A stretch of DNA of 64,000 nucleotides from Azolla caroliniana (taxonomy: Eukaryota; Plantae; Polypodiophyta): positions 18,166,001 to 18,230,000 of the forward strand of contig JBHGNT010000016.1 of assembly GCA_043228905.1 (NCBI GenBank), in the 5' to 3' direction. Below are positions 4,258 through 42,000 of this stretch, one piece after another (the first letter of the stretch is position 1; each line of letters starts with the position of its first letter). A model generated the notes under the pieces. The model searched no databases. It saw only the letters and a list, made by a program, of their open reading frames with translations, and had not been told where the DNA came from. The translations under genes were made by a program, and so were the position numbers.

Positions 4258-6151
4258 ATGGATAGAGGCATGGCGAGCTCGCTTCCAACAGAGAAGCTCG
4301 ACAGAACCAACTACGCGTCTTGGTCCTACAAGATGCACCAGTACTTGCTCGGGCACGGCTACTGGAGTTATGTCGAAGGAGCTAATGACGCGGCACCCGA
4401 ATCGACACACAGAGACTTCCCGTCGTCGGAGCAATCGGCGAGCAGGGTATTATACTGCTTCGCGTCGTGTGTGGGTGAACAGGTATTGAGCTATGTTCGG
4501 GATGCAAAGACGCCGGAGGGTGTGTGGGAAAATCTGAAGAAGATTTTCGCCGCAAGCACCACAGCCAGGAAGCTTCAGCTCCGACAGGAGTTGAGCAACC
4601 TACGACAACGCGACTTGTCGGTGGCGGACTATACCTCGAAGATCAAGGATATCTGGGACTCCCTCGCCTCCATAGATGTGAACATCGAGGAGAGTGACAT
4701 GGTCCAGATCTGTCTCGGAGGTTTGGCGTCGAAGTTCGGAGCGTTCCGAACGGTTGTGTGTACCCGGGAGAATACGCCGTCCTTTTTCGACTTACAGTTG
4801 ATGCTCCTGGTAGAGGCGAACCACACGGGTGCGTCGACGAGCACGCACACCGACAAAAAGATGTTGTACACGGAGGGAGAAAGGACCTGTGGTCGTGGCG
4901 GACGAGGCGAGTTAGTACGCAATGGAGGCAGCCGACGAGATCAAGGAAGAAGGCACCGAAGTGATGCCGACAGCAACTCCGGACCCTCCAGAAACAGGGG
5001 GAGTCAAAGCGATGAGAACCGGCAAGGGAATTCCATCGCGGAGTGTTGGTCCTGTGGCAAGAAAGGCCATAGAGAAAGTGAGTGCTGGAAGAAGCGCGCC
5101 GATTCGGAGAGAATTGGTTCCAGGAGCGGCTCCAGACATACCGACAAGGGAAATCGGCAGCGATCGCACTATGCCGAAGACTCCGGGAGAGTCGGAGAAG
5201 GGACTGTCTTCGTGACGAGACAGGAAGCAAACTCAATGAAACAGACCACCCCGAGATCGGACGAGGTGTGGTACGTAGACTCCGGCGCGTCAAACCACAT
5301 GACGAGCCATAAGGAGTGGTTCTCGTACCTAGAAAAACCGATACAACCTGGAGTAGTCGCAACAGGAGACGACACTCCGCATCCGATCGCGAATGTCGGA
5401 GAAGTTCCCCTTAGCCATGTCGGGCAGAAAGGGAAACTCATGAACCTGTTGCACGTCCCGACAATCACGAAAAACTTAGTCTCGGTCGGAAAGATCGTCG
5501 ACCAAGGGATGGAGGTTCGGTTTACACATCTCGGGTGCTTCATTGAGGAAGAAGGCCGTGTGATTGCGCAAGGGCGCAGAGACAGGAGGATGTTCATCCT
5601 CGACTCCACTGACGGCGGCACCGCAATGTTCGCGAAGGGACAAAAGACCGAGTCGGACATCGACTTGTGGCACAAGCGGATAGGCCACGTCAACCACCAA
5701 CGGCTTCAAGATCTGCAATCGAAACAGGTAGTATTCGGATTGCCCAAATTTAGTGGCCGAAAGGCACAAATTTGTGAAGCCTGCCAGTTCGGGAAGCAAC
5801 ACCGACTTCCTTTCCCCAACGAGCGAAACTAGAGCCGGAACAAGCTCGACCTTATACACTCCGATGTGTGCGGGCCGGCACAAAACGTTAGTCTTGGCGG
5901 GAGCCGATATTTCGTCTCCTTCATCGACGACCACACGCGGCACACGTGGATCTACCTCATTGAGAGGAAGAGCGAAGTCTTCGACTGTTTCTGTGACCTC
6001 AAAGGGTTCGTGGAAACGGAAACCGGACGGAAGATCAAGTGCCTGCGATCGGATGGCGGAAAAGAGTACTTTCCGGTCAATTCAACGGTTATCTACAACA
6101 AATGGGAATTCGTCGCGAATTCAGTTGTAGATACACGCTAGAGCAGAACGG
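4258..6151 (+). pseudogene. Copia gag-protease-integrase (5' part)
   Basis: Zn knuckle CWSCGKKGHRESEC; protease WYVDSGASNHM; LWHKRIGH..CEAC; RSDGGKEY; stop at 5830-5832. Confidence 0.92.
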
Positions 6152-7280: not shown

Positions 7281-10200
7281 TCAATTAGATTCCTCCATGT
7301 CTTCATTTTCATCCGGCCTATTATGTTCATCGTCGAGGTAATCGAGGTCAGGATCCTTGTCTTGTCTTTTCTTGAAAAGCTTTACTCTTTTTCCCGCAAT
7401 GGGTACGGCCAACCTTGATCCGTCTAGTTCCGCAAGGTGGTATGTGGCATTATCGTTGGCACTTGTCACCACATACGGCCCGAACCATCTTCTTGCAAAC
7501 TTCCTTGTTGTACTATGTTGATTGTCAAGGGTGCTGCCGTAAACCAAAACCCAATCCCCTTCTTCAATCTTCTTGGGACGAAGTCGATGCGTGTTGTCGA
7601 ACTGAACTTTGTTCTTTACTCGGGCTGCCTTCATCATCTTTCGCGCTTTTTCTAAATCTTGAGGTCTTCTTTCAAGTTGCCTTATCCGCGCCGCTAATAA
7701 CTCTTCTCGGCTCATCTCGTTCTCCCACGATATCGCTACCCATGAGGCGATCGTCCTTTTGATGGGCATAATCGGCTTTTGTCCATACATAAGCTCTATC
7801 GGCATATACCCTGTCACCGAGCTATGTGTCGTTCTATCGGCCCACAAGGCATAGGGTAATAGTTGTGGCCAATTCCCGACTCGACCGTTGCATGCCCGTA
7901 CGATGGCTTTAACGATAGGTCCATGCCCTCGCTCGATCTTCCCATTTGCTTCCGGATTGTAGGCAGTCGTGAGGGAGAGCTTCACGCCTAGTCTTTCGAA
8001 GAGCTCCGTCGCTTCATGCGCGTCCAACTCCCCTCGGTCGGCCACTATCTTCCCTACACATCCATATCGGCAAACAACATCTTCAAGTAAAAATTTACAA
8101 ACGGCTGAAGTCGTCTTATTTGTCAAGGCTCGTCCTTCCACTTGATTTGTCAGGTCTTCCCTTGCGAGCGCTAAGTACTTTATTTGTCCCACTCCCATTG
8201 GCATCGAGACCAGATCCACCATCCATTTGAAGTGAATGGTGAGTGGGTATGTCGGCTTTAACTCATCACGATGACGTATATTTGAATATATTTGGCAAGT
8301 TTCACATGTGGAAACGAAATGGAGTACATCTTTGTACATGCTTGGCCACCAGTACTTCTCCTTCAATTTTTCGAACGTCGCCCATGTTCCTCTATGACCT
8401 GCCCAAGCACTCTCGTGGAATTCGGTCATCAGCGTCTCTTGCTCTTCTTTCTTTACCACCACTCGACGTGGTATTCCTATCCTTCTTTTTGGATGTCGCC
8501 AAAGGAATCCTCCCTTCAAGAAGTATCGATAAGCTTTCTTCCGGATTCGTAGGGCCTCCTCCTTTGTCAACGAAGCATCGGTCGTCAATGTTCTTAGGAA
8601 TCTACCGATGAGTAACCACTCTCCTTCGTACTCGTTCTTGTTGAAGGCGTGGAGGGTTTGCGTGTCCTGGTCTTCTGCCGACAATCGAGCCATCTTGAAG
8701 AAGTCGAGGGTGACATCTTCATCTTCCGAAACCATGTTACTTTCATTTGAAAATCTTGCCCTCGACAACATGTCAACCATGGCGTTCTTCTTCCCTGCGA
8801 TGTGACGGATCTCTGGGTTTAAAGACTTGATGTAGGCGATCCACCTTAGCATAGCAAGATCTGGGGTCGCACATCCCGAGACCATTCCGAGAATTGGGAG
8901 ACAATCTGTCTCTATTATCACTTCTGACCCGATCAGGTAATCTTTGTCCGTCTTCACTGCCGACACAATACCCCAAAGTTCCCGCTTGACTTGGGCATAT
9001 CTTTGTTGCTGTTCGCTGAGAACCTTTGCTCCGAACCAGACGGCATATCGCGCATTATCTTCACCTTCTTGATTGATGACCCACCCGATTCCGGTTGGGC
9101 TCGTATCTACGGTCACGTAAATTGGTTTCCCTTCGGCATAGTCGGCCTTCCTTAGTGCCGAAGCTTCAAGAAGCAGTTTCTTTAATCTTCGCATCGCCTC
9201 TGTGTGCTCGTCTCGCCATTCGAACTTTATTCTTTTCTTTAGTAGTCCATATAATGGTTCGGCGACATGAGCGTAGTGAAGAATCCATATATGATAAAAC
9301 GTGCACGCTCCAAGGAACCTTCGAACCTCCGTTTGGTTTTCGCATTCTTCTTTCATGTCTTGGATTGCGTTCACTTTGGATGGCGAGGGCTTCCGGCCGT
9401 ATGCTCCACACAAGTGACCTACCACCAAGATCTCTGGTTGCCCGAATGCGGATTTTTCTCCCGAAAATGTCAAATTCGCATCTTTGAGCCTTTGAAGCAC
9501 CTTCTCTCAATCTTTCATATGATCCGCAACGAACTTTCTACAACCTTCCTTATCTTTCGATTCATCTTTCTCCTCATCCGAACATCCTTTTATCGGAATA
9601 TCATCCAAGAATGGCATCGTGATGTCCGGAATGCAATCCTTCAAGACTTTATTCATGGCATTCACCATATGAGCCACCAAGTTCGTTGCGCCTTGGGGTA
9701 AGGTACACATCCGCACAAGCCCGATCGGAGTCCTCATGGTTGTAATGTCCCGACTGTCGATCGCCAACTGGAATTGGTCATATCCGGAGTAGAGATCGCC
9801 AATGGAGTAGATGGACCGGCCCGCAAACGCTTCGGCAAATTCGTCCACGCTCGGACCGATTCCGGCATTTCGAATTGTCACCTTGTTGACGGGTTGAAGA
9901 TCTTCGATGAATCGCAATGATCCATTCTTCTTCGGCACCGTGAACCACCTATTGGAATAAGGAGCATTCGACGGTTCTAGAATTCCCATACTCACCTTCT
10001 CCTTTAAGAGCTCGATCAGCTTCGGAAGGTGTGCTCTCGGAACCGGTACCGGTTTCAAATTCCAAGGCACATGAGGCACCGTGAAGATCACCATTGGCTC
10101 TATAACCTTTGAGTCAGCGCATCCGATTTCTCGTGGGAAGAATGCGAAAGCCTTCCCATGTCTCTCAAGCATATCGCGAAACATTCGCTCCTCTTCAGGG

Positions 10201-28745: not shown

Positions 28746-31059
28746 GAACCTATAAATATGGACATACAATTCTTCTCAAAACCAATTCGAATCAACACCA
28801 GTCTTAAGCTCTCATTGCCTATCTTGTATCCATTCTTATTCTACTTTAATACATTCATTCTTATCTTATCATTTCATTCCTCTTCTTGTGATCTCTTTAT
28901 ATCTTTCGTCTATCACTTTACCTTCTCTCTTGGTTCAGACGGTTTGATTCGAATTCCTTCTTCTCTTCTAGCCTCCTCCACAAACACTAGTAAGTACCCA
29001 TGGCTGCTGGCAACCCACAAGAATACTTCGCCCTTGTTGCAGAAATGGAGAATCTCAAAAGCAAGTTTGCATCACTAGAGCTGGAGAATCAACGATTGCT
29101 TGAAGACCTACAGAAGGTTTTAGTAGAGAAGCAACAAATACACAACGAGTTTACATGAAGGGTTCAACAACTAGAGTCGGCAATAGTAGCTTTACAACAA
29201 CTAAAAGTCGACAGTCAAGGAGTTCTTAAGGAGCCCAAAATCAGCCTCCCAACTAAATTCGATGGGTCGAGAGCACATTTTTGGGGTTTTATAAATCAAG
29301 TGTGGTTGGTAATTCAGATGCATCCCACGCGTTATTCGACGGATTCATCTCGAGTCGGGTTAGTGGGCACTTTATTGACTGGCACGACATTGTCATGGTT
29401 TGCTCCATTGCTAGAAGCAAATTCGCCCCTACTCAATAACTTTGAAGAATTTATGAAAGAGTTTAGGGCTTGCTTCGGAGACACAGATAGTGTAAGAAGG
29501 GAAATCAACAAGATTCGCACATTGCGATAAGGGGATCAACCAATGTCAATGTATGCAACCAGTTTTCGTCTCATTGCAAGTGATATTCGTTGGGACGAAC
29601 AAGCTCTAATGGAGCAGTTTCGTTTGGGTCTCCGTGGAGATGTAAAAGATTTACTTCTTACCTTCCCTGAGGATCCAAAATCCCTTATAGAAGCTATTAG
29701 CCGAGCAATACGGTATGATAATCGGCTTTTGGAGCATCGGTCCGAGCAACAACAACAAACAAGATCAAGATTTATGCCAACTTATGCATCAATGATGCCA
29801 CAATCTCCAAGGCAACAATATAGCCCTGTCCCAACTCCACAACAAACATGTAGCCCAACACCAATGGATAGCCCGACACCGATGGAGATTGATATGACCC
29901 GGCGACGAGGACCTTTATCAGATGAAGAGAAACAACGTCGTTGAGAAAATCGATTATGCTTATATTGTGGAGGTCCAGGACATATTGCCATTCATTGTCC
30001 ACACAGATCGAAACACGTTCGCGTTCACAAGTGGAAGGATTGCACATTCCACTTGTAGAATCTTCTTAAAACGAAGCAAATACACCCTCTCTACAAAAAT
30101 TGGATGCACTAGTATCACATGTTCCTCAACTTGATGAGAATTTGCAAATATAAAAATACATGATAGATCTACGAGTGGAGATCATTAGAAATCATGCAAG
30201 TTTAGACATGTTGATAAGTTAATGTAGGCATAATAAAGTTCAACTATGGCTCAATATGGCACTACTGTGCGACAAGGGAAACACTAACTTAAAGACTTAT
30301 ATTAATTAGGTAAGTTTTACAAAAATATGAGGTGTACTTGTATCCATACTAATAAAATGAGATATAATTTATACTTTGACCCATACGTGCATGTATGTAA
30401 TTGTGGAAAATGTAGGATAATGCATATTAGGATAAGTGATTGGAATAACTAACTTATTAAAGTATTCAATACTTGTATTTAAAGTTGATCTAATCTATTC
30501 CTCAGTTTGTTCATATGGGATCAAACCATATGTGTATATAATTGTGCACAATGTAAGGCAGTGAACTTTAGGATAATGTCGTGGAAATAACAAACCTATT
30601 AGGCTTTCATACCTGTATTTAAAATTGATCTACTCTATTGCTTAGGTGATTCACACAAGATCAAACTCCGAACGATAACGCAACTGGAACCATTATCAAC
30701 ACACTACACAATCTAAGCAGCAATGGAATAGAAACATAATAGTTTTAACAATAGAAGACAAAGATCCATAATAACAACATGGACAGTCATGGAAACAATT
30801 ATAGGGCCATGTTCTGTTAAGGTTAGCTTGGACCAAAATCAACCTCCATTTAAACTAGTTCATGTTTCTCCATAAGTTTGGTAGTCAGCTATGCACGCGG
30901 TGAAACCAATGTCATAAATCTACTAATCAAGTATATAAAAATAAAATTGAAACATATAGAAGATTATAAAGAATAGAATCCACTAGGTAAAACCCAAAAT
31001 TTGTATTAATAATGTGAAATCTTAACAAATCGTCAGTGTCATATTCTTTATAGAGTCTA

Positions 31060-34000
31060 TTACATAGCAATCAATTCATCAACGTCATTTTCTTCATCAT
31101 CTTGTGTAGAACTGTCTTCGGCTATACGTGCATTGGTTTCCCCTGTTAGCCGAGCCAACGAAATATCTTCTATAAGCTCATCATCAAGCTCTATTAGCTC
31201 CCCCGGTTCGCCGGCTAACGGAGGAATAGGCTCTCGCGAAGCAGGTTCAAACCTTTCTGTATTGGCGAGGTTCTTTGCACCGACCTCCTCATCCTGGTCT
31301 GGGCACTCCCACAAAGCCTTAATCCGCATATTAATAAATATAACTTGGTCCTCGTCCTTCTCCAATGCAACTGTATTTCTAAACAGCATCAATGCACATG
31401 CTGACGTAGTTCCTGTGATGTAAGTAACAAGAAGATTTAGTTGTCAAACGAAAAAAAAGTGATTGGTTATCTCAAGATCGTTACCCTAGTTCGAGGAATA
31501 CCTGTGCCAGAAAAGAGATCTAATATCCAGTCTCCTTCAACAGAAAACATCTCGATCAAGCGCATCATAAGTCGCTGAGGTTTTTGGTATGGGTTGACAA
31601 GTCCCCGTTCTGTCGTGGTGACATGTCGCAATTTCCGAGTCACTGCTGGATATACCAACAGATTTGAACCTCCCACTTCATTAGAATGCTCTTTGATTCT
31701 CTGTTTCTTAATTTCATCGAAGTAGCCAACCGTTATGTATTCAATGGCATTAACGAACCGAAAAGTTGGCCCTCTATTTACATTGGTCTTGATCCTATAA
31801 AAAATAATTCATCGAGTTAAGAATAGATTCAACAACCTTAAGAAATGCAATATAGTGAAAGACACCTATAAATAATCCTTACCATGCAAGGTTCTCGATG
31901 CCATGGCAACGAGATCTCAAAGCTTGAGCTACCGAGTACCCTTGGTCCATACTATGAAAGACAACTATTCGCCACAAGGATGCGGTCGTTAGCTCAGCGA
32001 AATCCTTGACCATCTTCTCCAATTGTTTAAACCTAAACGGTTCATCGTCGTATGATGACCCAACCATTCGAAATCCGTAAGGAATATCCGCAATCATTAG
32101 CGTATATTCCTTCTTTGGCACCTTCTGGATCAAGTCGATGACATCACCGCAAACCACATTGTAGTAAAGATCTCTTGTAATATCTTTTTTGTGGCTAAAT
32201 TTTTTAAAGGAGCCATCTTCCTCCATTTCGTACGCCTTGACTAAGCGACGATCCTTTTCTTTTCTGGCTCGCTCGAGATGTGCAAGGAAGGATGTAGGGA
32301 AATCGTGTATATCCTTAACTTCTCCTTTTTTCTTGCCTCGACACGGTTTCTAATAGAAGCAATAGGACATCAGGTATTATTATACAAGCCATATGATGAA
32401 AGGGTAATGAAAAAACATGAATACTAACCCAATCCTTGAATGCAATAAAATACTTTGATAACGCCTTATACGAAGACGTTAGAGGATAATCCTCGGTCAC
32501 TTGTTCCCAAGTTATACATCCAAGTTGTTTCATCATAACTTATTGGATCTTCATGTACACCTTATGACTGTAAAATTAAAAATCAAGATTAGAACTTTGA
32601 ATTACACCAGATAGACTACAATTTCAGTATTTGAGGGACTTACTTATTGAACTCAGTGACCATTTCTTCAAGGCTTAAATCTTTCGCCACAACCCTTGAC
32701 AAAACCGACACAAGAAGCTGCTCGTCCTTAATACCTTGCATCGCTCTCCATAGAGACAGCTTCATGTCATCTGCCGCTTCTTCAATTGTCAAGTCAATTT
32801 TCTTGGCGGCTTGTGACTTTAACTCTAGTTGAGGGTCAACCCTACATTTCTTTTGTCGTTGACCCTTTACCTCCTTATTCTCCCACATTGAGAAGATTTG
32901 ATCTTGTAGGTCCCATACTTCTCCATCTCTAAACGCCAATTGAAACCAAGACTCATACTTTCGAAGACCATCGGACCTAACATTATCATCTACCACAATG
33001 CCGACTTCATGCAGACATTGACGTCGAAGGCCTGGATGTAACTTCACACCAAACTTTTGTTTCACATCTAAATACTCGTGGTGGAAGAACCGTATACGCT
33101 CAATGGACGACATTTTCTGCCTATAGTCATTATCATTATTATGGTCCCATGCCAACAGCTTAGCCTCTTCGGTTGTGAGCCCAACATAAATTTTGCACTC
33201 GGCATACTTGAAGAAGAAAGTGGTTGGATGTTCTCTCACAAGTTGCCGACGTGCCTCTGCTGAATGTGATCCACCAATGACAAAATAATTATATTGATCA
33301 TGCTTTCTAATATCAAAATCTTCAATGGTTTCACATTCTTCAGGATCTACCATAACAATAAAAGGCACCACAGTGGCATGAGGATTAATTTTCATTTTTT
33401 TCTTGAGATTTTGAACATGCATGCGGTGAGGCTCTCTAATCTCAAGTGGTCTTCGACCTGTTTTTTCATCAATAGGGGGCCGATGGATGTGTGTTATAGG
33501 CAAATTAAATACTTGCCCTTTCCTGACCAGCTTCCGTTGCATTAACTCTCTCCTTATTTTATTCTGCTCGGATGACAAAACACCCGAGGCCAGCTCAGCT
33601 CCTGGCGTCCCCTTATTATCCTCCTCTTCGTTTTCACTTGTTGAATCCGTATCCGACATTTTCGTTGTCTTCTTCTTTGCTGGTCTTGACTGGACTTTGG
33701 AAACCTTTTTTGTTGGCTTCAATGGGGAGGGCACTTCATCTCTTAGAGTTACATGGCCTTGTATATAAGGCCTCAAGGTAACAATAAGGTTTTGTGAGCT
33801 ATCAAGTGCTTTTTTGAACACTTCTGGCCCACAAGATTCTTTTACTAAAAGGTCTTCTGAAAGGAACACTTTACGTACCCCCTTGGAGCACTCTATCATT
33901 ACCAGTATGTTGGCCGAATCTGCATCTTCGTAGTCAAATCGTAGAATACGGCCATACATAAATGGGGTTTCCTTTCCAAGTTGCCCCTCACCCTTCTTCT

Positions 34001-35395
34001 TTGCTGTATACAATACGACTTTTTTCTTTGAGTCGACATATTGCATACACCATTCCTTGTCCGTTAGATCTCGGTCAGGAAGGTCTTCACCTCCAGTAGC
34101 GGCAACAAGTTTCTTTTGGCTAACATCACTATGTGGCTGAGATTTTGTCTCTTCGTTAAAGAGAAGCCTTTTTCCTCTCTTCATGGTCTCAGGAGCTACC
34201 TTGGTCTGGGCTTCGATTGGAGAACCTTGTATGCGAAGCTTTATTTTCTTCACCGGTCGGTCCGACAGGTTTTCAAACGACCTATTTAAGAAAGTATATG
34301 CAAAAACATAAGTTAGGTAGTCACGTAGATTAAGGTTGTATATTAACATGAAGAACAGTTCCCAGGAGCAGTCCTATATTCAAAAATCTATTATAGGCAG
34401 GGCTATTCAACCTAGAAAATATATATCGTAATAAGTAAAAAGGGTTATATATTCTTTTAAATAGTAGGTATGACTTATATACATTACAAACCTATATTGA
34501 CGAGAATTTGCTATCGTAAAGGCAATTTGTGGATCATTTTCTACTATTTTAAGCTAAAGTAGGTCATAAAACACCTATAATTAGAGCATGTTTTTTTTTA
34601 AAAGTAAGGAAAGCCAACATAAAAAGACTGATTTTGCCAGACAATTTGATATCTTTTCCATCCCAAAATTATTTGTTACCCCAAAAATACAATTTTTTCC
34701 TCTCAAAGCCTTCTTATATATAGGAACTCGATACGGCGTATCGAGTTCCTGTTTAAAACCTACACTTTAAACAAGAACTCAATACGGCGTATTGAGTTCG
34801 TGTTTAAAGTTTAGGTTTTAAACACGAACTCGATACGCCGTATCGAGTTCCTGTTTAAAATCCAAACTTTAAACAGGAACTCGATACGCCGTATCAAGTT
34901 CGTGTTTAAAGTGTAGGTTTTAAACACGAACTCGATACGCCGTATCGAGTTCCTGTTTAAAATCCAAACTTTAAACACGAACTCGATACGCCGTATCAAG
35001 TTCGTGTTTAAAATCCAAACTTTAAACACGAACTCGATACGCCGTATCAAGTTCGTGTTTAAAAACTATACTTTAAACACTAACTCGGTACGGCGTATCG
35101 AGTTCCTGTTTAAAACCTACACATTAAACAGGAACTCGATACGGCGTATCGAGTTCCTGTTTAAAACCTACACTTTAAACATGAACTCGATACGGCGTAT
35201 CAAGTTCCTGTATAAAAAGCAAAATTAAATTATGAACTCGATACGCCGTATCGAGTTCATGTATAAATATTTGTATTGTATACATGAACTCGATACGGGG
35301 TATCGAGTTCTTGAGAAACGAAACATATTTACAAAAATGTCCACAGTGTCAGAGGCCTACCTGGAGTCCTCGCGCTCGATTCTCTTTGAAGACAT
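31060..35395 (-). pseudogene. Six-exon ParB/Srx-like + beta-class N6-A/N4-C DNA methyltransferase gene (~974 aa; one premature TAA at 32540-32542)
   Basis: Exons 35395-35361, 34281-32644, 32567-32429, 32349-31883, 31794-31502, 31412-31060; all introns GT..AG with consistent phases. Motifs: GDVIDL..LMIADIPYG, W.K, NPYQKPQRLM.RLI, DWILDLFSGTGTT..ALMLFRNTVALEKD; ParB-like YFVIGGSHSAEA. Confidence 0.85.
34715..35312. repeat. 12 x 51-bp tandem array of ~43-bp palindromes in intron 1 of the MTase gene
   Basis: Unit tttaaacacgaactcgatacg(c/g)cgtatcgagttcgtgtttaaa plus ~8 nt; the core recurs at 34724, 34775, 34826, 34877, 34928, 34979, 35030, 35081, 35132, 35183, 35234, 35286. Confidence 0.95.
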
Positions 35396-35538
35396 GTTTG
35401 ATCGTGTGGAAGTGGAGGCGGAGATCGCGCTTTCGTGCTTTGTGCTTTGTGTGCTTTGTGTGCTCTGTGTGCTCTCTACGTTCTGTGTGCTCTGTACGCT
35501 TTGTACGCTCTGGTGAGTGAAATATGACGAGGTCTTCC

Positions 35539-35546
35539 TATTTATA
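35539..35546 (-). promoter_or_regulatory. TATA box of the MTase gene
   Basis: TATAAATA on the minus strand, ~145 nt upstream of the predicted ATG. Confidence 0.55.
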
Positions 35547-36245
35547 GGGATTGAACACATTGGTTAAAGTAACCATAGTCACCTTAACCAAGGTTGGTAA
35601 CTTTGAGGATAGTTAGTTGGTAACCATAGTCACATTAACTAGAGAAACTTATGATTGTATTAATGATTACAAAGTCAAACTACCATATTGATCAATCTTT
35701 TATAGTCATAACAACCTACAATGACTTCAAAGGTTATGAATGAGACAATGATAGAGGTTCATGAATGTACCAATGATTGATTACTAAAACCAACAATTTT
35801 TATGACTCTCAAATGTTGTGTATTAAAGATGTGGGCATAAATTAACCAATGATTGATAAGTCTAATATTTAAAATGGTGAGCATTAAAGAACCAATGAGT
35901 GAGACATTCTATATCAAAATGGGTGCCATTAATTAGCCAAATTTTAACATTAATCCAACATATTCATGGCTTGTTAATGATTAGTTTTATATTTTACTTA
36001 ATTTAACTTTATATAGATCTAGTTTATATAATAATTGATATTTTAAGTACAATTACTTTATTAAAAATAATTTTTTGATGTATTGTATTAATAGAATATT
36101 ACATAATATAGACATTCTATTGATTTGGCTTTTGTTTAGAGAGAAGTTTATGTTTAGAGAGGAGTATATGTTTAGAGAGGAGCTTATTAGTTTTTTTCTT
36201 TCCCCTAAGCCCATAACTTAGAGAGCCCTATCTAGACCTTAAGCC

Positions 36246-39026
36246 ATGAGTGAAGATTCACCGTTCTCGATTGAAGAATATTGTTTATCATCAGACCCAT
36301 CGTTTTCTATTGAAGAGTATTGTTTGTCATCAGAGTCACCATATTCGATTGAAGAATATTGTCTGTCGACCGACTCACCATATTCTATCGAAGAATATTG
36401 TCTGAGCTCATCTACAGGGAATGTAAATAATGACACATGTGAAGAGTTCTCTATTGAAGAATACGATATTAATAAAGATACCGAGAATGAAGGAAGTGCC
36501 CAGGAAACATTGAATAACATTGGCGATGGTCACAGCAAAGAATTAGACTGTAACAAGGTTACACCAACCTCTATGCAGGAAGAGAAATCTGGGACCCCTA
36601 TGCATATTAGAAGAATCCCACGAAGAATTCGTCTAGCTAGATTTAGCTTGGTGACATCAGATAAACAGATTGGATTTGATGTCAACAAAATATGTTGTGC
36701 CCGTGGTTGTATGTCTATGATTGGAAAATCAAAGTTGCGAGAATTAAGGCGATACTATTTTTCGATGACCGGTGATGAGCAAGACACTTACCTCGGGTCA
36801 CATATGCAACTAGTATCTGACAAATGTACGGGGATCAAAGTATCATTCGAGTATTATATCTTCCATGCGCAACAGATATGTAGAGTTGCATTCAAAATTG
36901 CGTTATGTGTTAGTAACATGCGGCTACATAGAGTACAACAACGTCTACTTAGCGGGGATCAGATGCTCAATTGTAAAGAGGTTCCAAGTATGAAAGGTGC
37001 AATTGGAAGACTAGCTATTGGCTGGATGAAAACTTACTTTCAGTTAAATTGTGAAGTAATGCCCACTACAGGTAGGATGCATCTTTCTGATAATTATACA
37101 CGTCGGGAAGTTTATGATGTCTATCGATCTGATATGCTGGGCTCACGTAATAAGTCGATCACATATAGCCAATTCACAAGATTATGGAGAGCTCGGTTTT
37201 CAAATGTTATTATTCCTCGTAAAGTACGTATGGGGTATTGCTCCATTTGTGCAAATCTTAAAAGTTTGGCTAAAGGTGCAAAGACATCAATGGAAAAGGA
37301 TACGAGTAAGAAGTTACTACAAGAGCATCGTGAGGCACAATCCTTAGAACGAAGGAAGGCGATGCATCATAGAGAGAAGTGTTTGAAGAGGCCCGCACAA
37401 TACATGTGCTTAATGATAGATGGCATGGACCAGAAGAAGACATGCTTGCCGCATATGCGGAGGCTCCCCAAAGATGTCAATGATGAGTGCCTTGTTCAAA
37501 TGCACTTGGTGGGATGCTTGGCTTATAATAGGTCTGTTCGACCTCACGTCTTCATTACTTACCCCAATGTTCACAATGACCCTAACCTAATAGTTACAGT
37601 GATTCACTGAGTTTTGATGTCTTGGGGACAACCTTTCCCCCCTGTTCTATACATTCAATTGGACAATACTGCTAGAGAGAACAAAAATTCAACTGTATTT
37701 GGCTATCTAAGTATGTTGGTCAACCTAGAATTGTTTAGGAAAGTGAAAGTCAATTTCCTTTTGGTTGGCCACACACATGACCATATAGATCAGATGTTTA
37801 GCACATTCTCCAGACAGTTGTCTCGGCATGATGTTTTCACTTTACCTAAACTATTTGATGTCATTTGTGATGCTTATACACCACGCCCAAAAGTGTTACA
37901 CTTGAAGGAGGTATATGACTTTAAGAGATATATATTAGATGGGGGTGGTGGGAATGTTAAAGTGCTTGCTCAGTTAAACAATATAAGTTTCAATCACATT
38001 TTTTTGATAAAGAAAAATGGAATAAGTGGTTCTACACTTTTGTATGCCAAACAATATTCATCTTCTACAACATGGGAACCTGAAGGTGGTTGCCAGTTAT
38101 TACTTTGTATGCCGAGTACAATTGTCCATGGAGCTAAGCAAATGCCAATTGAGAAGAAAGGACAGTTGCAGAGCGACTTGGTATCAGAACAAAAACGGTC
38201 ATGGCTCCAAGCCTTAGAAGAAAAAAGAAAGCATATTGAGGCCGCCAAGAAATATGCCGCACAACAAGACACGTCATGGTGGGATGTATTTTATAGTGAT
38301 CAGAAAGAAATTATAGACAATTGTGTATCTGTTGATAATTGGAATTTGGAAACGCCATTCACATGGTCGCTACAACATGATCGCGTAAATAGAAGTCCGG
38401 AGCAACTAGTAAATGCGATTAATGACAGCTTGGTCCATCCACAACAAAGAGACATTTATGTGGGACCAAGGATGACCAAAGCAGCCGAAGCTAGATGGCA
38501 AGGAAATTTGCAAGAGCTCACCGCGGGGATGTTGATTGCAACGCCGGCTGATGAGAACTCACATGGCCACCAATTTTGGGTTGGTAAAATTCTAGAAGTG
38601 CTAATGCATGAAATAGATAACACGATCAAGTCTATAAATGTTCATTGGTACAACACTAGAAGTGCAAATGCTTTTACAGGTAAGTATACATTGGAGATGA
38701 TTGAATGCCAAACAAGAAGGGGAGGTAGGAAGAGGAAGCGAAACATTCGTAACACCTCGACCCTTGATATCTCTGATGTGGATATCATCGTGTACGACTT
38801 CACACTTACAAAAGCCGGACGATTAAGGAAGTCAACAATAGATATAATAAAAGAAAAATTACCAGGTCTACAAGGTGGCTCGAGTCAAAGGCAAACGAGA
38901 TCTGCTACATATAATCTAGAGTCAAACCATTTGGTTTATGACGAAGATAATGCACTGATTGGTACATCCGAGGATGATGAGGAGGAATCGTCATTGTATA
39001 TTAGTTATAGTAGTGATTCTCCGTAA
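36246..39026 (+). pseudogene. DD(D/E) transposase (Sola-like/DUF7869-type), ~926 aa, one TGA at 37608-37610
   Basis: Cys/His motifs (CCARGC, CSIC..H), MIDGMDQ, YIQLDNTARENKN, FLLVGHTHDHIDQMFS. The two ORFs are in the same frame, separated only by a stop (probably CGA>TGA). Confidence 0.85.
36258..36410 (+). repeat. Four 39-bp coding repeats (SP[FY]SIEEYCLSS) at transposase N-terminus
   Basis: SIEEYCLS repeated four times in the translation, plus a degenerate fifth copy. Confidence 0.85.
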
Positions 39027-42000
39027 AGGAGTGATCATGAATGTATATTTGGCTATTAAGTGTAACTACATTCCGCTTGTAACAAATCGAGTAATATAAA
39101 ATCATGTGTTTTGAATTCTTATGATTTCTAAAAAATCGTTTCTTATAAAATAACATTGGTTGGAAAGTTTGTGATATAAATTGAGAATGCATCTTTTTGA
39201 AATTCGTCTTTTTTTAGTTACTTCTAAATCACGAAAATAGTGGATTTTTAACCTTTTTCATAGTATGTTTGAACATGTATGATACTGGTATCAATGTGTT
39301 TTGTAAAATCATTGAAAAACCCCTAAAATTTCCCTTATCCTTCCATTTATGCGCGATCCTTCCACTTGTGAACGCAAACGTGTTTCGAGACGTCAGGTAC
39401 ATCACATTAAGTATGATAATAGAAATGAGTCTAGCATTATTGATAATAGAAATGAGTCTAGCATTGTTGAAACTGTGCCAAATAGTGTTTCTAGTAATCA
39501 AACTCTATCCAATAAGTTTGAGGTCCTAAGCCAATTAGAAGAGGAGTCAAACGAATAAGTCCGGCCAAAATCAGAGATGTTTGGTTGGACAGTCCTAGAT
39601 CTGTACAGCCTAGTGTGGGTTCCATCTCTTCCAAGCATGTTAGTAGAGTTTTCTCAAGCCAAGTACAAGTTAGGACACCAAGTTGTCAACTTCATGTCCT
39701 AGCTCTCGTAGATAACGGATCCAATTCTTGTTTCATGGATAGACATTTTGCTCGAAAACATCAAATAGCCTTGCTTAAACTTCCTTGCCCAGTTTCCGTA
39801 GTAGTGATTGATGGATGTCCCATAGCTTTTGGAAAGATATTCGAGGATTCTGAGACGATACACATACTCTTAGGTGATTTAGGATGTGTGGTCTCCTTTA
39901 ACATAATCCGTAGCCCTGAGCATCCAATAGTCCTTGGTTTGCCGTGGTTCGAGCTACACAACCCAAGAATTGATTGGAGACGACGAGAAATTAGGTGCCC
40001 TTCAAAAGGAAACATAGTAGTCAAGGGTCAAACCTAGGATCCTCCCCTTGAAAAACAGTGTTACCAATTCACCCTCTACCAAACATGTTGTTCCTCTTCA
40101 TCAAATTTCAACCATCACCCTAGAACATTTATGCCAAGAAGGAGCAAAAGAAGATTTATTCTTATTTGCCATATCAGCTGCACCTTCTAGTGACACTCAA
40201 GGGAGGTCAAAGGTCTACATTCCTAAAAAGTACCAAGAATATGCTGATGTCTTCGACAAAGACAAATCTAGTGTACTTCCAAAGCATCGGCCATACGATT
40301 GTCCCATTGATCTACAGTCAGGAAAAGAGCCACCATGGGGTCCGATCTACAATCTGTCACCAACGGAACTTGAGGTTCTTTGAGCATACATTGACGAGAA
40401 TCTTGCAAGTGGATTTATTCGACATTCAAAGTCTCCAGCTGGTGCTCCTATCTTTTTCGTGAAGAAAAAGGACGGCTCACTTCGTTTGGTCGTGGATTAT
40501 CGGGGATTAAATAAAGTGACAATAAGAAATAGGCATGCTCTACCTTTAATTTCCAGTCTTTTAGAGCGCATTGGTGGGGCAAAGCATTTTACCAAGATTG
40601 ATCTAAGGGGTGCATATAATCTTGTCCGTATTCAACCGGGAGACGAGTGTAAGACAACATTTCGCACTCGATATGGCCATTTCGAGTATACAGTTATGCC
40701 TTTTGGGCTCACAAATGCTCTTGCAGTGTTTCAACATATGGCAAATGACATTTTTCGAGATTTTCTAGATATCTTTCTTATCATCTATTTAGACGATCTA
40801 TTGATTTACTCTAGAACACAAGCGGAGCATGATATACATGTCCGGAATGTAATCCAATGCTTAAGAGAGTATGGTCTTTATGCCAAACTAGAGAAATACA
40901 GTTTTGATTGCAAAGAAGTTGAGTTCTTGGGTTATACCATTTCATCCAAAGGTATCTTCATGGATCCAACGAAAGTTCGAACAGTATTGGAATGGCATAC
41001 TCCAAGTTCCGTTCGCGATGTCCAATGTTTCCTTGGATTTGCCAACTTCTATCGCAAATTCATATGGAATTATTCGAAGATTGTATTGCCACTTACTCAA
41101 CTCACCAAGAAAAATCAAGCATTTGTTTGGACTCCTGAAGCAGACAAACCCTTTACTCAGTTGAAAGAGGCATTCACATCAGCCCCTGTCTTAGCTCATG
41201 TTGATCCAGAAAAGCCATTTATCATTGAGGTAGATGCATCCGACTTTGCATTGGGGAGCATCCTACCACAACCAGGTGAAGATGGGCACTTACATCCAGT
41301 CGCGTTTCACTCAAGAAAGTTTAATGTTGCGGAGATCAACTACGAGGTGCATGACAAAGAGTTACTAGCTGCGGTCGACTCTTTTGCGCAATGGTGACAT
41401 TTCCTGGAAGGTTCGCCTCATCAAATCATCATTTATAGTGACCACAAAAATCTTACATATTTTCAGACGGCTCAAGTGCTAAATAGGAGACAAGCTTGGT
41501 GGGCGTAATTTTTAACTCGTTTTGATTTCAAGATCATTTTCCGCCCCGGGAACCAACAAGGCCAAGCAGATGCTCTATCTCGACGCTCATATTTGGCACT
41601 TCGCCATGGAGATCCAGATTTCGACAATCAAAAGCAAGTTCTCCTTGGTCCAACAAAGCTACAAGCAACCACGGTTTGTGCCATGCCATTGGATTCAAGT
41701 CTTCACTCTGATGCTTTTGCTAAGGATGTCCTCACCCACCTTGGTCCAAATCATGCATTTTGCTCCACATTGCCAGGGAAGTCTCGACGCTATAAGGAGT
41801 TCAAGTGGCAAGATAACTTACTTTTCTACAAGAATCTACTTTATGTCGTTGATGGATCACCACGCCTTTGAGTGTTGGAGCACTGTCATGATGCCCGTAT
41901 GGCCGGACACTTTGGTATTGCCAATAGCATGGAGCTAGTGAAGTGATCATTTTGGTGGCCTCATTTACAACAATTCGTTGAAGATTATGTTCGCACATGT

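Follow-up and report, generated by a model that had tools for sequence, protein, structure and literature searches.

A streptophyte DNA transposon family that pairs a DUF7869-type transposase with a ParB-like/amino-DNA-methyltransferase fusion

Results

The locus

A 64,000-nucleotide stretch of the genome of the fern Azolla caroliniana (here called the window; assembly GCA_043228905.1, contig JBHGNT010000016.1, positions 18,166,001 to 18,230,000 of the forward strand) contains a DNA transposon with two genes placed head to head: a transposase gene on the + strand and, on the - strand, a spliced gene for a ParB-like domain joined to an amino-DNA-methyltransferase. The element occupies window positions 30012-39384 (9,373 bp) and has 36-nt terminal inverted repeats (TIRs), with TCGA flanking each end. 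A preliminary description of the window had reported this arrangement, and as a whole it is confirmed. The features are listed below in window coordinates.

30012..30047, + strand: left TIR, starting AACACG (inverted-repeat detection; terminus common to other copies)
39349..39384, - strand: right TIR (inverted-repeat detection)
30008..30011: left flank TCGA, probable 4-bp target-site duplication (TSD)
39385..39388: right flank TCGA, probable TSD, same tetranucleotide as 30008-30011
36246..39026, + strand: transposase gene, intronless (open reading frames 36246-37610 and 37614-39026, same frame)
35538-35547: TATA-like CTATAAATAG, upstream of putative exon 1 (sequence reading)
35361..35395, - strand: putative exon 1 of the methyltransferase gene, 35 nt, ATG at 35395, donor GTAGGC (from sequence reading and frame arithmetic only)
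34724..35310: palindrome array inside putative intron 1, 11.5 units of 51 bp, a 25-nt palindrome GAACTCGATACGSCGTATCGAGTTC in each
32644..34281, - strand: exon 2, beta-barrel at about 33738-34085, ParB/Srx-like plus helical DNA-binding part at about 32644-33560 (AlphaFold, fold search)
32429..32567, - strand: exon 3, linker with the sole internal stop, TAA at 32542-32540
31883..32331, - strand: exon 4, catalytic motif IV ADIPYGF, DIPY at 32088-32077 (conserved across copies)
31502..31794, - strand: exon 5, W-IKTN, NPYQKPQRL and DLFSGTG, the S-adenosylmethionine (SAM)-binding motif I (Pfam N6_N4_Mtase)
31060..31412, - strand: exon 6, end of motif I (G|TTSAC), acidic tail, stop TAA at 31062-31060 (exon model)
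29300..30007, + strand: gag (capsid, CCHC knuckle) of the long terminal repeat (LTR) retrotransposon into which the element inserted, resuming with the protease at 39389-40037 (Pfam)

Recurrence of the gene pair

The transposase and the ParB-methyltransferase stand head to head in at least eight independent, deeply diverged elements. The preliminary description had asked for other copies linking the methyltransferase to this transposase and these TIRs, and such copies exist. L001 has the gene pair, both TIRs and the palindrome array at 68% nucleotide identity to the window, while L004 and L006 have the gene pair, an intact transposase of 890 aa and 37-nt TIRs at 97%. The head-to-head pair also lies on a fern-like contig (L003) and on chromosome 18 of Ceratopteris richardii (L014), where the transposase has 870 aa and all methyltransferase exons are free of stops; we looked for the TIRs of this Ceratopteris copy and did not find them, and its flanks hold microsatellites. 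The liverwort Riccia sorocarpa has the pair (L013) and retains DIPY. Two metagenome contigs of 44-46% GC (L008 and L010) show the same layout in intronless form at 25-39% identity; their proteins, of 981 aa and 789 aa, have a ParB-like domain (hhalign probability 98-100%) plus the methyltransferase, and motif IV reads DPPY in L008 and DFPY in L010. The methyltransferase has named relatives in Adiantum, Ceratopteris, Diphasiastrum (a lycophyte), Ginkgo, Riccia and Chara, and a single DNA run placed 5,398 contig pieces (at least 80% identity) on 5.5 kb. The proposal of a plant cut-and-paste TIR family is thus upheld by the TIRs, the many sites occupied, the RNase H-fold transposase and the multiple linked copies.

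Between the window and every other lineage, synonymous sites are saturated (pS 0.76-0.94), whereas pN lies at 0.08-0.31 for each of the three parts compared (methyltransferase, N-terminal part and transposase). Judged from these substitution patterns, all modules of the element are under purifying selection. Both genes rank the nearest elements alike (L001, then L014, L004 and L003, then L013); co-divergence rests on these distance ranks, the trees of the eight elements being poorly resolved. Since the pair has stayed together, diverged together and been held under purifying selection, we regard the methyltransferase as a core gene and not as cargo. As far as such comparisons can tell, the gene pair is co-maintained from liverworts to ferns and in the intronless relatives.

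Derivatives and isolated parts of the family were also encountered. L022 (271-3785), which is 3.5 kb long and retains both TIRs, is probably a non-autonomous copy shortened by deletion, and L011 has only a methyltransferase of 288 aa (51% GC). In Riccia a second DUF7869 transposase gene (L013, 18543-21752) lies 5 kb downstream of the first element, and the annotation of this species holds about 25 DUF7869 gene models. Adiantum models are chimeric, P0184 having a retrotransposon-like part and P0262 an integrase domain (PF00665), and the exon with motif IV is skipped in the truncated gene models of Ginkgo (P0029-P0033) and Riccia. Because the annotated "host" models are chimeric or truncated in this way, surveys based on proteomes would misread the family.

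The methyltransferase domain

Sequence and profile comparisons identify the C-terminal domain of the - strand protein as a beta-class (PF01555), phage-like amino-DNA-methyltransferase. Each exon was searched separately, and the joined protein was used only for frame and stop counts. Exon 5 alone passes Pfam N6_N4_Mtase (PF01555) with 33.8 bits against a cut-off of 26.7 (E 4e-8); other single-sequence exon searches of Pfam and PDB are weak (E of about 0.1 for the DIPY exon, and a weak UPF0020 match). A family profile built from staggered exon translations of five lineages plus two natural gene models (alignment A2) matches CcrM (6pbd) over the whole domain (positions 48-280, E 2e-11), and the alignment pairs ADIPY with DPPY as well as W-K-N, QKP and D-F-G-GTT. 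The A2 profile also matches M.MboIIA, M.RsrI and DpnA, whereas N4-cytosine enzymes score far lower (PvuII 4e-3, bdelloid N4CMT 0.2). The natural gene models P0031, P0034 and P0184 served as stand-ins for a continuous domain. P0184, from Adiantum, covers Pfam positions 6-218 of 221 (E 2.6e-12), natural full-length relatives reach E 1e-27 against the phage family phrog_67, and the best NCBIfam matches are CcrM and adenine-specific models.

The preliminary description had deduced a beta-class enzyme from the placing of motif IV before motif I, and had called for a methyltransferase-fold match. The order holds, and it is also found in the continuous natural proteins P0184, P0031, P0179 and P0068; the fold matches come from exon 5 (Pfam) and from the family profile (CcrM), with phrog_67 in agreement. 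The position given there for DIPY (32077-32088) is right. QKP, NPYQKP and motif I are kept in all copies compared. Motif IV of the family reads D-[I/V/A/L/F]-P-Y-G-F: the Asp, the second Pro and the Tyr are kept and the first Pro is replaced, the canonical DPPY occurring only in L008, the most distant member.

One further protein met in these searches, P0143 (1,598 aa, on an 11-kb ENA contig), has three tandem DPPF methyltransferase modules; as far as seen, its layout is unrelated to that of the transposon.

The ParB/Srx-like domain and the palindrome arrays

Searched as a single sequence, the ParB exon has no match in Pfam or PDB; gp41 gave the sole PDB profile matches, which we judged spurious. 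An AlphaFold model based on 25 homologues (alignment A1) has a pLDDT of 75-93 in its two folded regions. With the ParB-region model Foldseek returned Noc, ParB, KorB, PadC and Srx (E 2e-5 to 1e-2, probability 1.0), and the independent aligner VIA gave PadC (Z 9.6), pNOB8 ParB-N (Z 8.7 over 203 residues), KorB (Z 8.5) and Arabidopsis Srx (Z 7.8). The protein encoded by exon 2 is accordingly modelled with a ParB/Srx fold, in agreement with the ParB-like domain first proposed. In place of the ParB GxxRxxA box with its conserved Arg, the family has GG-x-H-S/T-x-x-A, in which S363 is nearly invariant, and the same is seen in Riccia, L008 and L010.

N-terminal to this domain the model has a beta-barrel (residues 89-204 of the exon-2 open reading frame; 33738-34085, - strand), whose best match is the SANTA domain of M18BP1 (Z 5.9, 95 residues aligned), with PH-like folds next in rank. 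The likeness is weak and does no more than hint that the barrel may be a chromatin-related module.

The palindromes of the array have the half-site TCGATAC around a variable centre of 3-5 nt, which recurs in L001 and L007; the consensus TCGATRC is kept in L001, L007 and the Ceratopteris copy L014. In L014 the palindrome is GTCGATGC-TTG-GCATCGAC and there are two arrays (5514-5892 and 7897-8400), one upstream of the ParB exon and the other within the intron that precedes the DIPY exon. L003 and L004 have palindromes of a related CGATGCA type. Because the half-site is kept amid diverged neutral DNA while the spacer is free, we suggest that a sequence-specific protein binds there as a dimer. The ParB-like/helical domain is the first candidate for this role, and the transposase is also possible.

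Exon structure of the methyltransferase gene

The gene was proposed to have six exons with GT..AG introns and a product of about 974 aa. The exon structure stands, with GT..AG at all five introns; the length does not, the joined model being 2,907 nt long, with 968 codons and a single stop within them. In this model DIPY lies at aa 686, QKP at aa 824 and DLFSGTGTT, which is split by the last intron, at aa 846. Support for the introns comes from comparison of copies plus a Ceratopteris gene model. L007, a 72% identical copy, has the same splice-site positions and internal exons of equal length (139, 449 and 293 nt); its exons are 76-82% identical to those of the window with no insertions or deletions, whereas the introns are 58-65% identical and differ in length. 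The Ceratopteris gene model P0018 runs through the exon 2/3 junction of the window into exon 4. Two of the introns are missing from the liverwort copy, and none is present in the metagenome relatives. A contig of 241 nt from a run presumed to be RNA lies on exon 5 (about 84% identity) and holds no junction; it is uninformative on splicing.

At the internal TAA, P0018 and all other aligned copies have Glu, and nearly all other genomic copies have C at 32542, giving GAA (one DNA run, X2). Since nearly all other copies encode Glu there, we take the stop to be private to the window copy. Tandem repeats of 9 nt and 27 nt (TGTGCTCTG) fill 35441-35512, in the putative 5' untranslated region between the TATA-like box and the ATG.

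The transposase

The only in-frame stop of the transposase gene is the TGA at 37608-37610. The second half of the protein matches Pfam DUF7869 (E 1e-41), and the window transposase is 51.6% identical over 910 columns to the intact 890-aa transposase of L004 (L004:507-3179). Candidates for the DDD triad in the window lie within IDGMDQ, LDN..NKN and GHTHDHIDQ, and D355, D436 and D478 are invariant across 31 transposase homologues. The AlphaFold model (pLDDT 74) has weak matches to RNase H-like folds (PFV integrase core, Mos1, ISCth4, IstA, MuA and RNase HI; E 4e-3 to 2e-2). The + strand DD(D/E) transposase of the preliminary description is therefore retained, as a DUF7869-type enzyme with an invariant D..D..D and an RNase H-like fold. 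Omega is 0.19 between the close copies L004 and L006, and the transposase family extends to a prasinophyte and a sea urchin.

A beta-rich domain at the C-terminus (about 38560-38830; L004 residues about 729-818) resembles BAH (Foldseek, DNMT1 BAH1, probability 0.95) and may, if the model is right, be a chromatin-reading module for target choice. The N-terminus (36246-36420) has four to five tandem units of 13 residues (about 39 nt) with SIEEYCLSS; this repeat is not kept in the L004 homologue, the alignment with which begins at 36303.

The transposase may belong to the Sola superfamily, which was reportedly defined in 2009 by Bao and colleagues as having a DDD transposase and a 4-bp TSD. A TSD of 4 nt is given as a hallmark of Sola elsewhere (PMC3845634). 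The invariant D..D..D and the likely 4-bp TSD are the only features that fit; the Pfam label here is DUF7869 alone, and the comparison is with the description of the superfamily.

Termini and insertion site

The inverted repeat, flank included, has arms of 40 nt (30008-30047 and 39349-39388) that are 93% complementary, with no match in shuffled sequence. The 40-bp TIRs of the preliminary description thus mark a real inverted repeat beyond chance, and their length has to be corrected to 36 nt plus the TCGA flank, which extends the repeat because it is palindromic. An identical 27-nt terminus, beginning AACACGTTYGCG, is present in 39 other public contigs with about 35 distinct flanks outside it, and the AACAC terminus is common to the lineages L001, L003 and L004. 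Since the outside flanks vary among contigs with the same terminus, we place the true termini at the AACAC of 30012 and 39384.

The TCGA on both sides is probably a 4-bp TSD; the flank match is from a single insertion and would arise by chance in about 1 of 256 cases. The retrotransposon at the insertion site has Pfam matches to Retrotrans_gag, Ty3_capsid, DUF4939 and an aspartyl protease. The insertion cuts the CCHC zinc knuckle of its gag after CPHR, leaving gag upstream and the protease downstream, and removal of one TCGA keeps the gag reading frame intact. No second copy of this retrotransposon, which would give an empty site, was found in the window.

The locus is a recently disabled copy with one nonsense codon in each of its two genes, the TGA of the transposase and the TAA of the methyltransferase gene; the preliminary description had likewise counted one stop in each gene.

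Discussion

We conclude that the best overall explanation of these observations is a two-gene transposon family in which the ParB-methyltransferase is a core gene that serves self-methylation, and we would put the probability of this reading at roughly 0.6. What is new here is the fusion of ParB and methyltransferase, the DUF7869 transposase, the streptophyte host range and the D-x-P-Y motif; transposons with PF01555 plus ParB-like genes were already known.

The closest precedent is provided by the PAG elements of red algae, from which the present family is set apart on the basis of their published description. Red-algal Plavaka, Zisupton and Mutator elements carry PAG2 (a PF01555 methylase plus SET) and PAG3 (ParB-like plus a 2OG oxygenase) in an association that is ancient and has been proposed to serve self-modification, with arrays of inverted repeats beside the ParB-like gene (bioRxiv 10.1101/2025.02.11.637652). 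Both are DDE-type DNA transposons with a PF01555 methyltransferase, a ParB-like domain and a tandem inverted-repeat array beside the ParB-like gene. In the present family, however, ParB and methyltransferase form one polypeptide, and Pfam finds neither a SET nor a 2OG domain in the window exons or the full-length relatives. The transposase is of CACTA/Plavaka type there and of DUF7869 type here, the elements measure 17-19 kb there and about 8-9 kb here, and the hosts here are streptophytes. The rarity that the preliminary description assigned to eukaryotic amino-methyltransferases needs qualifying in the light of these red-algal transposons with PF01555 and ParB-like genes, reported in 2025.

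Among prokaryotic enzymes, phrog_67 and the group of CcrM, M.MboIIA, M.RsrI and DpnA likewise have motif IV ahead of motif I, a QKP loop and FxGxGTT; phage and plasmid enzymes of this class are often linked or fused to ParB. Association with ParB is typical of the methyltransferases of mobile elements, as in the ParB-Tls loci, and no such land-plant clade is among those listed in that survey (Iyer et al. 2016, PMC4738411). The fern gene differs from the phage and plasmid enzymes in being eukaryotic, with introns, an extra N-terminal beta-barrel, D-x-P-Y and a ParB box without its Arg, and in sitting in a eukaryotic cut-and-paste transposon. A full-text literature search found no published description of this transposon family.

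Two eukaryotic nuclear enzymes, MpDN4MT1 of Marchantia and the bdelloid N4CMT, are likewise beta-class PF01555 proteins derived from prokaryotes. They are host genes with TSPPY/SPPY, and the bdelloid enzyme has a chromodomain. MpDN4MT1a/b are writers of N4-methylcytosine (4mC) in sperm with the catalytic motif TSPPY, and the Marchantia preprint that describes them does not mention a ParB domain. None of the best 150 matches of our family has TSPPY; these carry D-[IVALFP]-P-Y, and even the copy from the liverwort Riccia has DIPY. On motif IV, the link to the Marchantia 4mC enzyme that had been suggested at the outset is therefore not supported, and we reject it. KDZ/Plavaka transposons of basidiomycetes carry TET/JBP dioxygenases (Iyer et al. 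2014, as cited in the red-algal study); these are alike in having a conserved partner gene that modifies DNA bases, but the partner is an oxidase of 5-methylcytosine (5mC), and the transposase family and the hosts are others.

A mechanism can be outlined, with its steps held at different strengths. The ParB-like/helical domain would bind the palindrome arrays (TCGATRC) as a dimer, as ParB does on parS, a step to which we give an even chance. Once bound, it would tether the methyltransferase, which would methylate exocyclic amino groups of the element's DNA. We think that the methyltransferase is probably catalytically active. An Asp stands first in motif IV and adenine enzymes match best, which makes N6-adenine the likelier target, and N6-methyladenine (6mA) would be about twice as probable a product as 4mC. 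More tentatively, and by analogy, the mark might hinder host silencing by 5mC and heterochromatin, or tie both the expression of the transposase and the recognition of ends to replication; the two options taken together have rather less than an even chance. Dam methylation at the ends or promoters of IS10/Tn10 and Tn5 gates transposition to the hemimethylated state that follows replication. This is a functional analogy, in which adenine methylation times transposition, but the methylase there belongs to the host, whereas the fern element would supply its own. The most complete version of the proposal, an ancient transposon lineage of non-flowering streptophytes (charophytes, liverworts, lycophytes, ferns and Ginkgo) that writes its own amino-methyl mark, probably 6mA, nucleated at parS-like palindromes by a ParB-derived reader, would fit the sequences and is doubtful in all its parts together.

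Several observations weigh against the self-methylating two-gene family. The window has DIPY and not DPPY, the second position of motif IV is never Pro in plant members, and DLPR is found in two relatives. L002, a copy on a Ceratopteris scaffold, has decayed, and no transposase lies within 10 kb of it or of the Chara copy L012. There is no 4-bp flank repeat in L001 (GCATAT/GCAAAT), L004 or L022, which are short-read repeat contigs and may be chimeric. Since the box Arg is Ser/Thr, CTP clamping in the manner of ParB is doubtful. Finally, the stretch was not found in any RNA run searched.

The departures in motif IV bear on the possibility that the methyltransferase domain is catalytically dead, its fold being kept only for binding SAM or DNA while the protein, bound to the palindromes, acts as a cofactor or regulator of transposition in synapsis, repression or tethering. 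The missing first Pro of the plant motif (DIPY/DVPY/DAPY) and the DLPR relatives speak for such a loss, as do DIPH/DISQ in Ginkgo, and inactive methyltransferase domains are known in mobile elements such as DIRS1 (PMC4738411). Set against this, the Asp, Pro and Tyr of motif IV, NPYQKP and DLFSGTGTT are under strong purifying selection in the liverwort, fern and metagenome lineages, and the most distant member has the canonical DPPY. Active amino-methyltransferases of RlmL/THUMP type can have D-[ILV]-P-[YF], and the weak UPF0020 match agrees with this. On balance we think a dead domain unlikely.

We hold a similarly low opinion of an active enzyme that writes 4mC, as MpDN4MT1 and the bdelloid N4CMT do. 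The beta class of PF01555 covers both specificities, for which sequence is no safe guide, and the palindromes and TIRs are rich in sites that contain CG (TCGA, ACGT, CGCG). However, motif IV starts with Asp and not with the Ser of SPPY/TSPPY, and adenine enzymes far outscore N4-cytosine enzymes in the family profile and head the NCBIfam matches.

It is much less credible that the ParB-methyltransferase belongs mainly to the host, as a gene domesticated in plants with flagellate sperm and comparable to MpDN4MT1, with the transposon copies secondary. The taxa in which it was found (Chara, a liverwort, a lycophyte, ferns and Ginkgo) do all have motile sperm, and besides Chara L012 some Ginkgo and Adiantum models have no transposase detected nearby. 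The high copy number, TIRs, variable flanks and pseudogenised copies speak against it, as does the transposase that adjoins the gene wherever whole elements were recovered, Riccia and Ceratopteris included; the Ginkgo and Riccia gene models are fragmentary, and motif IV is unlike that of MpDN4MT1. A host methyltransferase captured once between these TIRs, or an accidental nesting or chimera, is ruled out for practical purposes by the recurrence of the gene pair, its orientation, the palindrome array and the termini in at least eight diverged elements.

To our knowledge, very few transposons encode DNA-modifying enzymes, the cases being TET/JBP in fungal KDZ elements and PAG in red algae; the sole self-modifying transposon that we know to be usually cited for land plants is VANDAL, which removes methylation. 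In the two-gene family described here, an amino-methyltransferase of phage type has been conserved and selected as a core gene of a transposon for more than 450 million years in the streptophytes. A fern carries the family in many copies, and an apparently intact element lies in the model fern Ceratopteris, at about 25.456-25.464 Mb of CM035423.1. The presence of 6mA or 4mC in plant DNA, the identity of its writer and a ParB-like tether for self-marking are thereby opened to test. A caution follows for annotation, as most PF01555 genes annotated for ferns, Ginkgo, Chara and liverworts belong to transposons. If the mark is indeed written by the element on itself, part of the 6mA/4mC signal in these plant genomes would be made by transposons and would serve escape from host control or its timing. 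Such a family would parallel, in eukaryotes, the self-methylation of phages, and domesticated DNA methyltransferases could readily arise from it.

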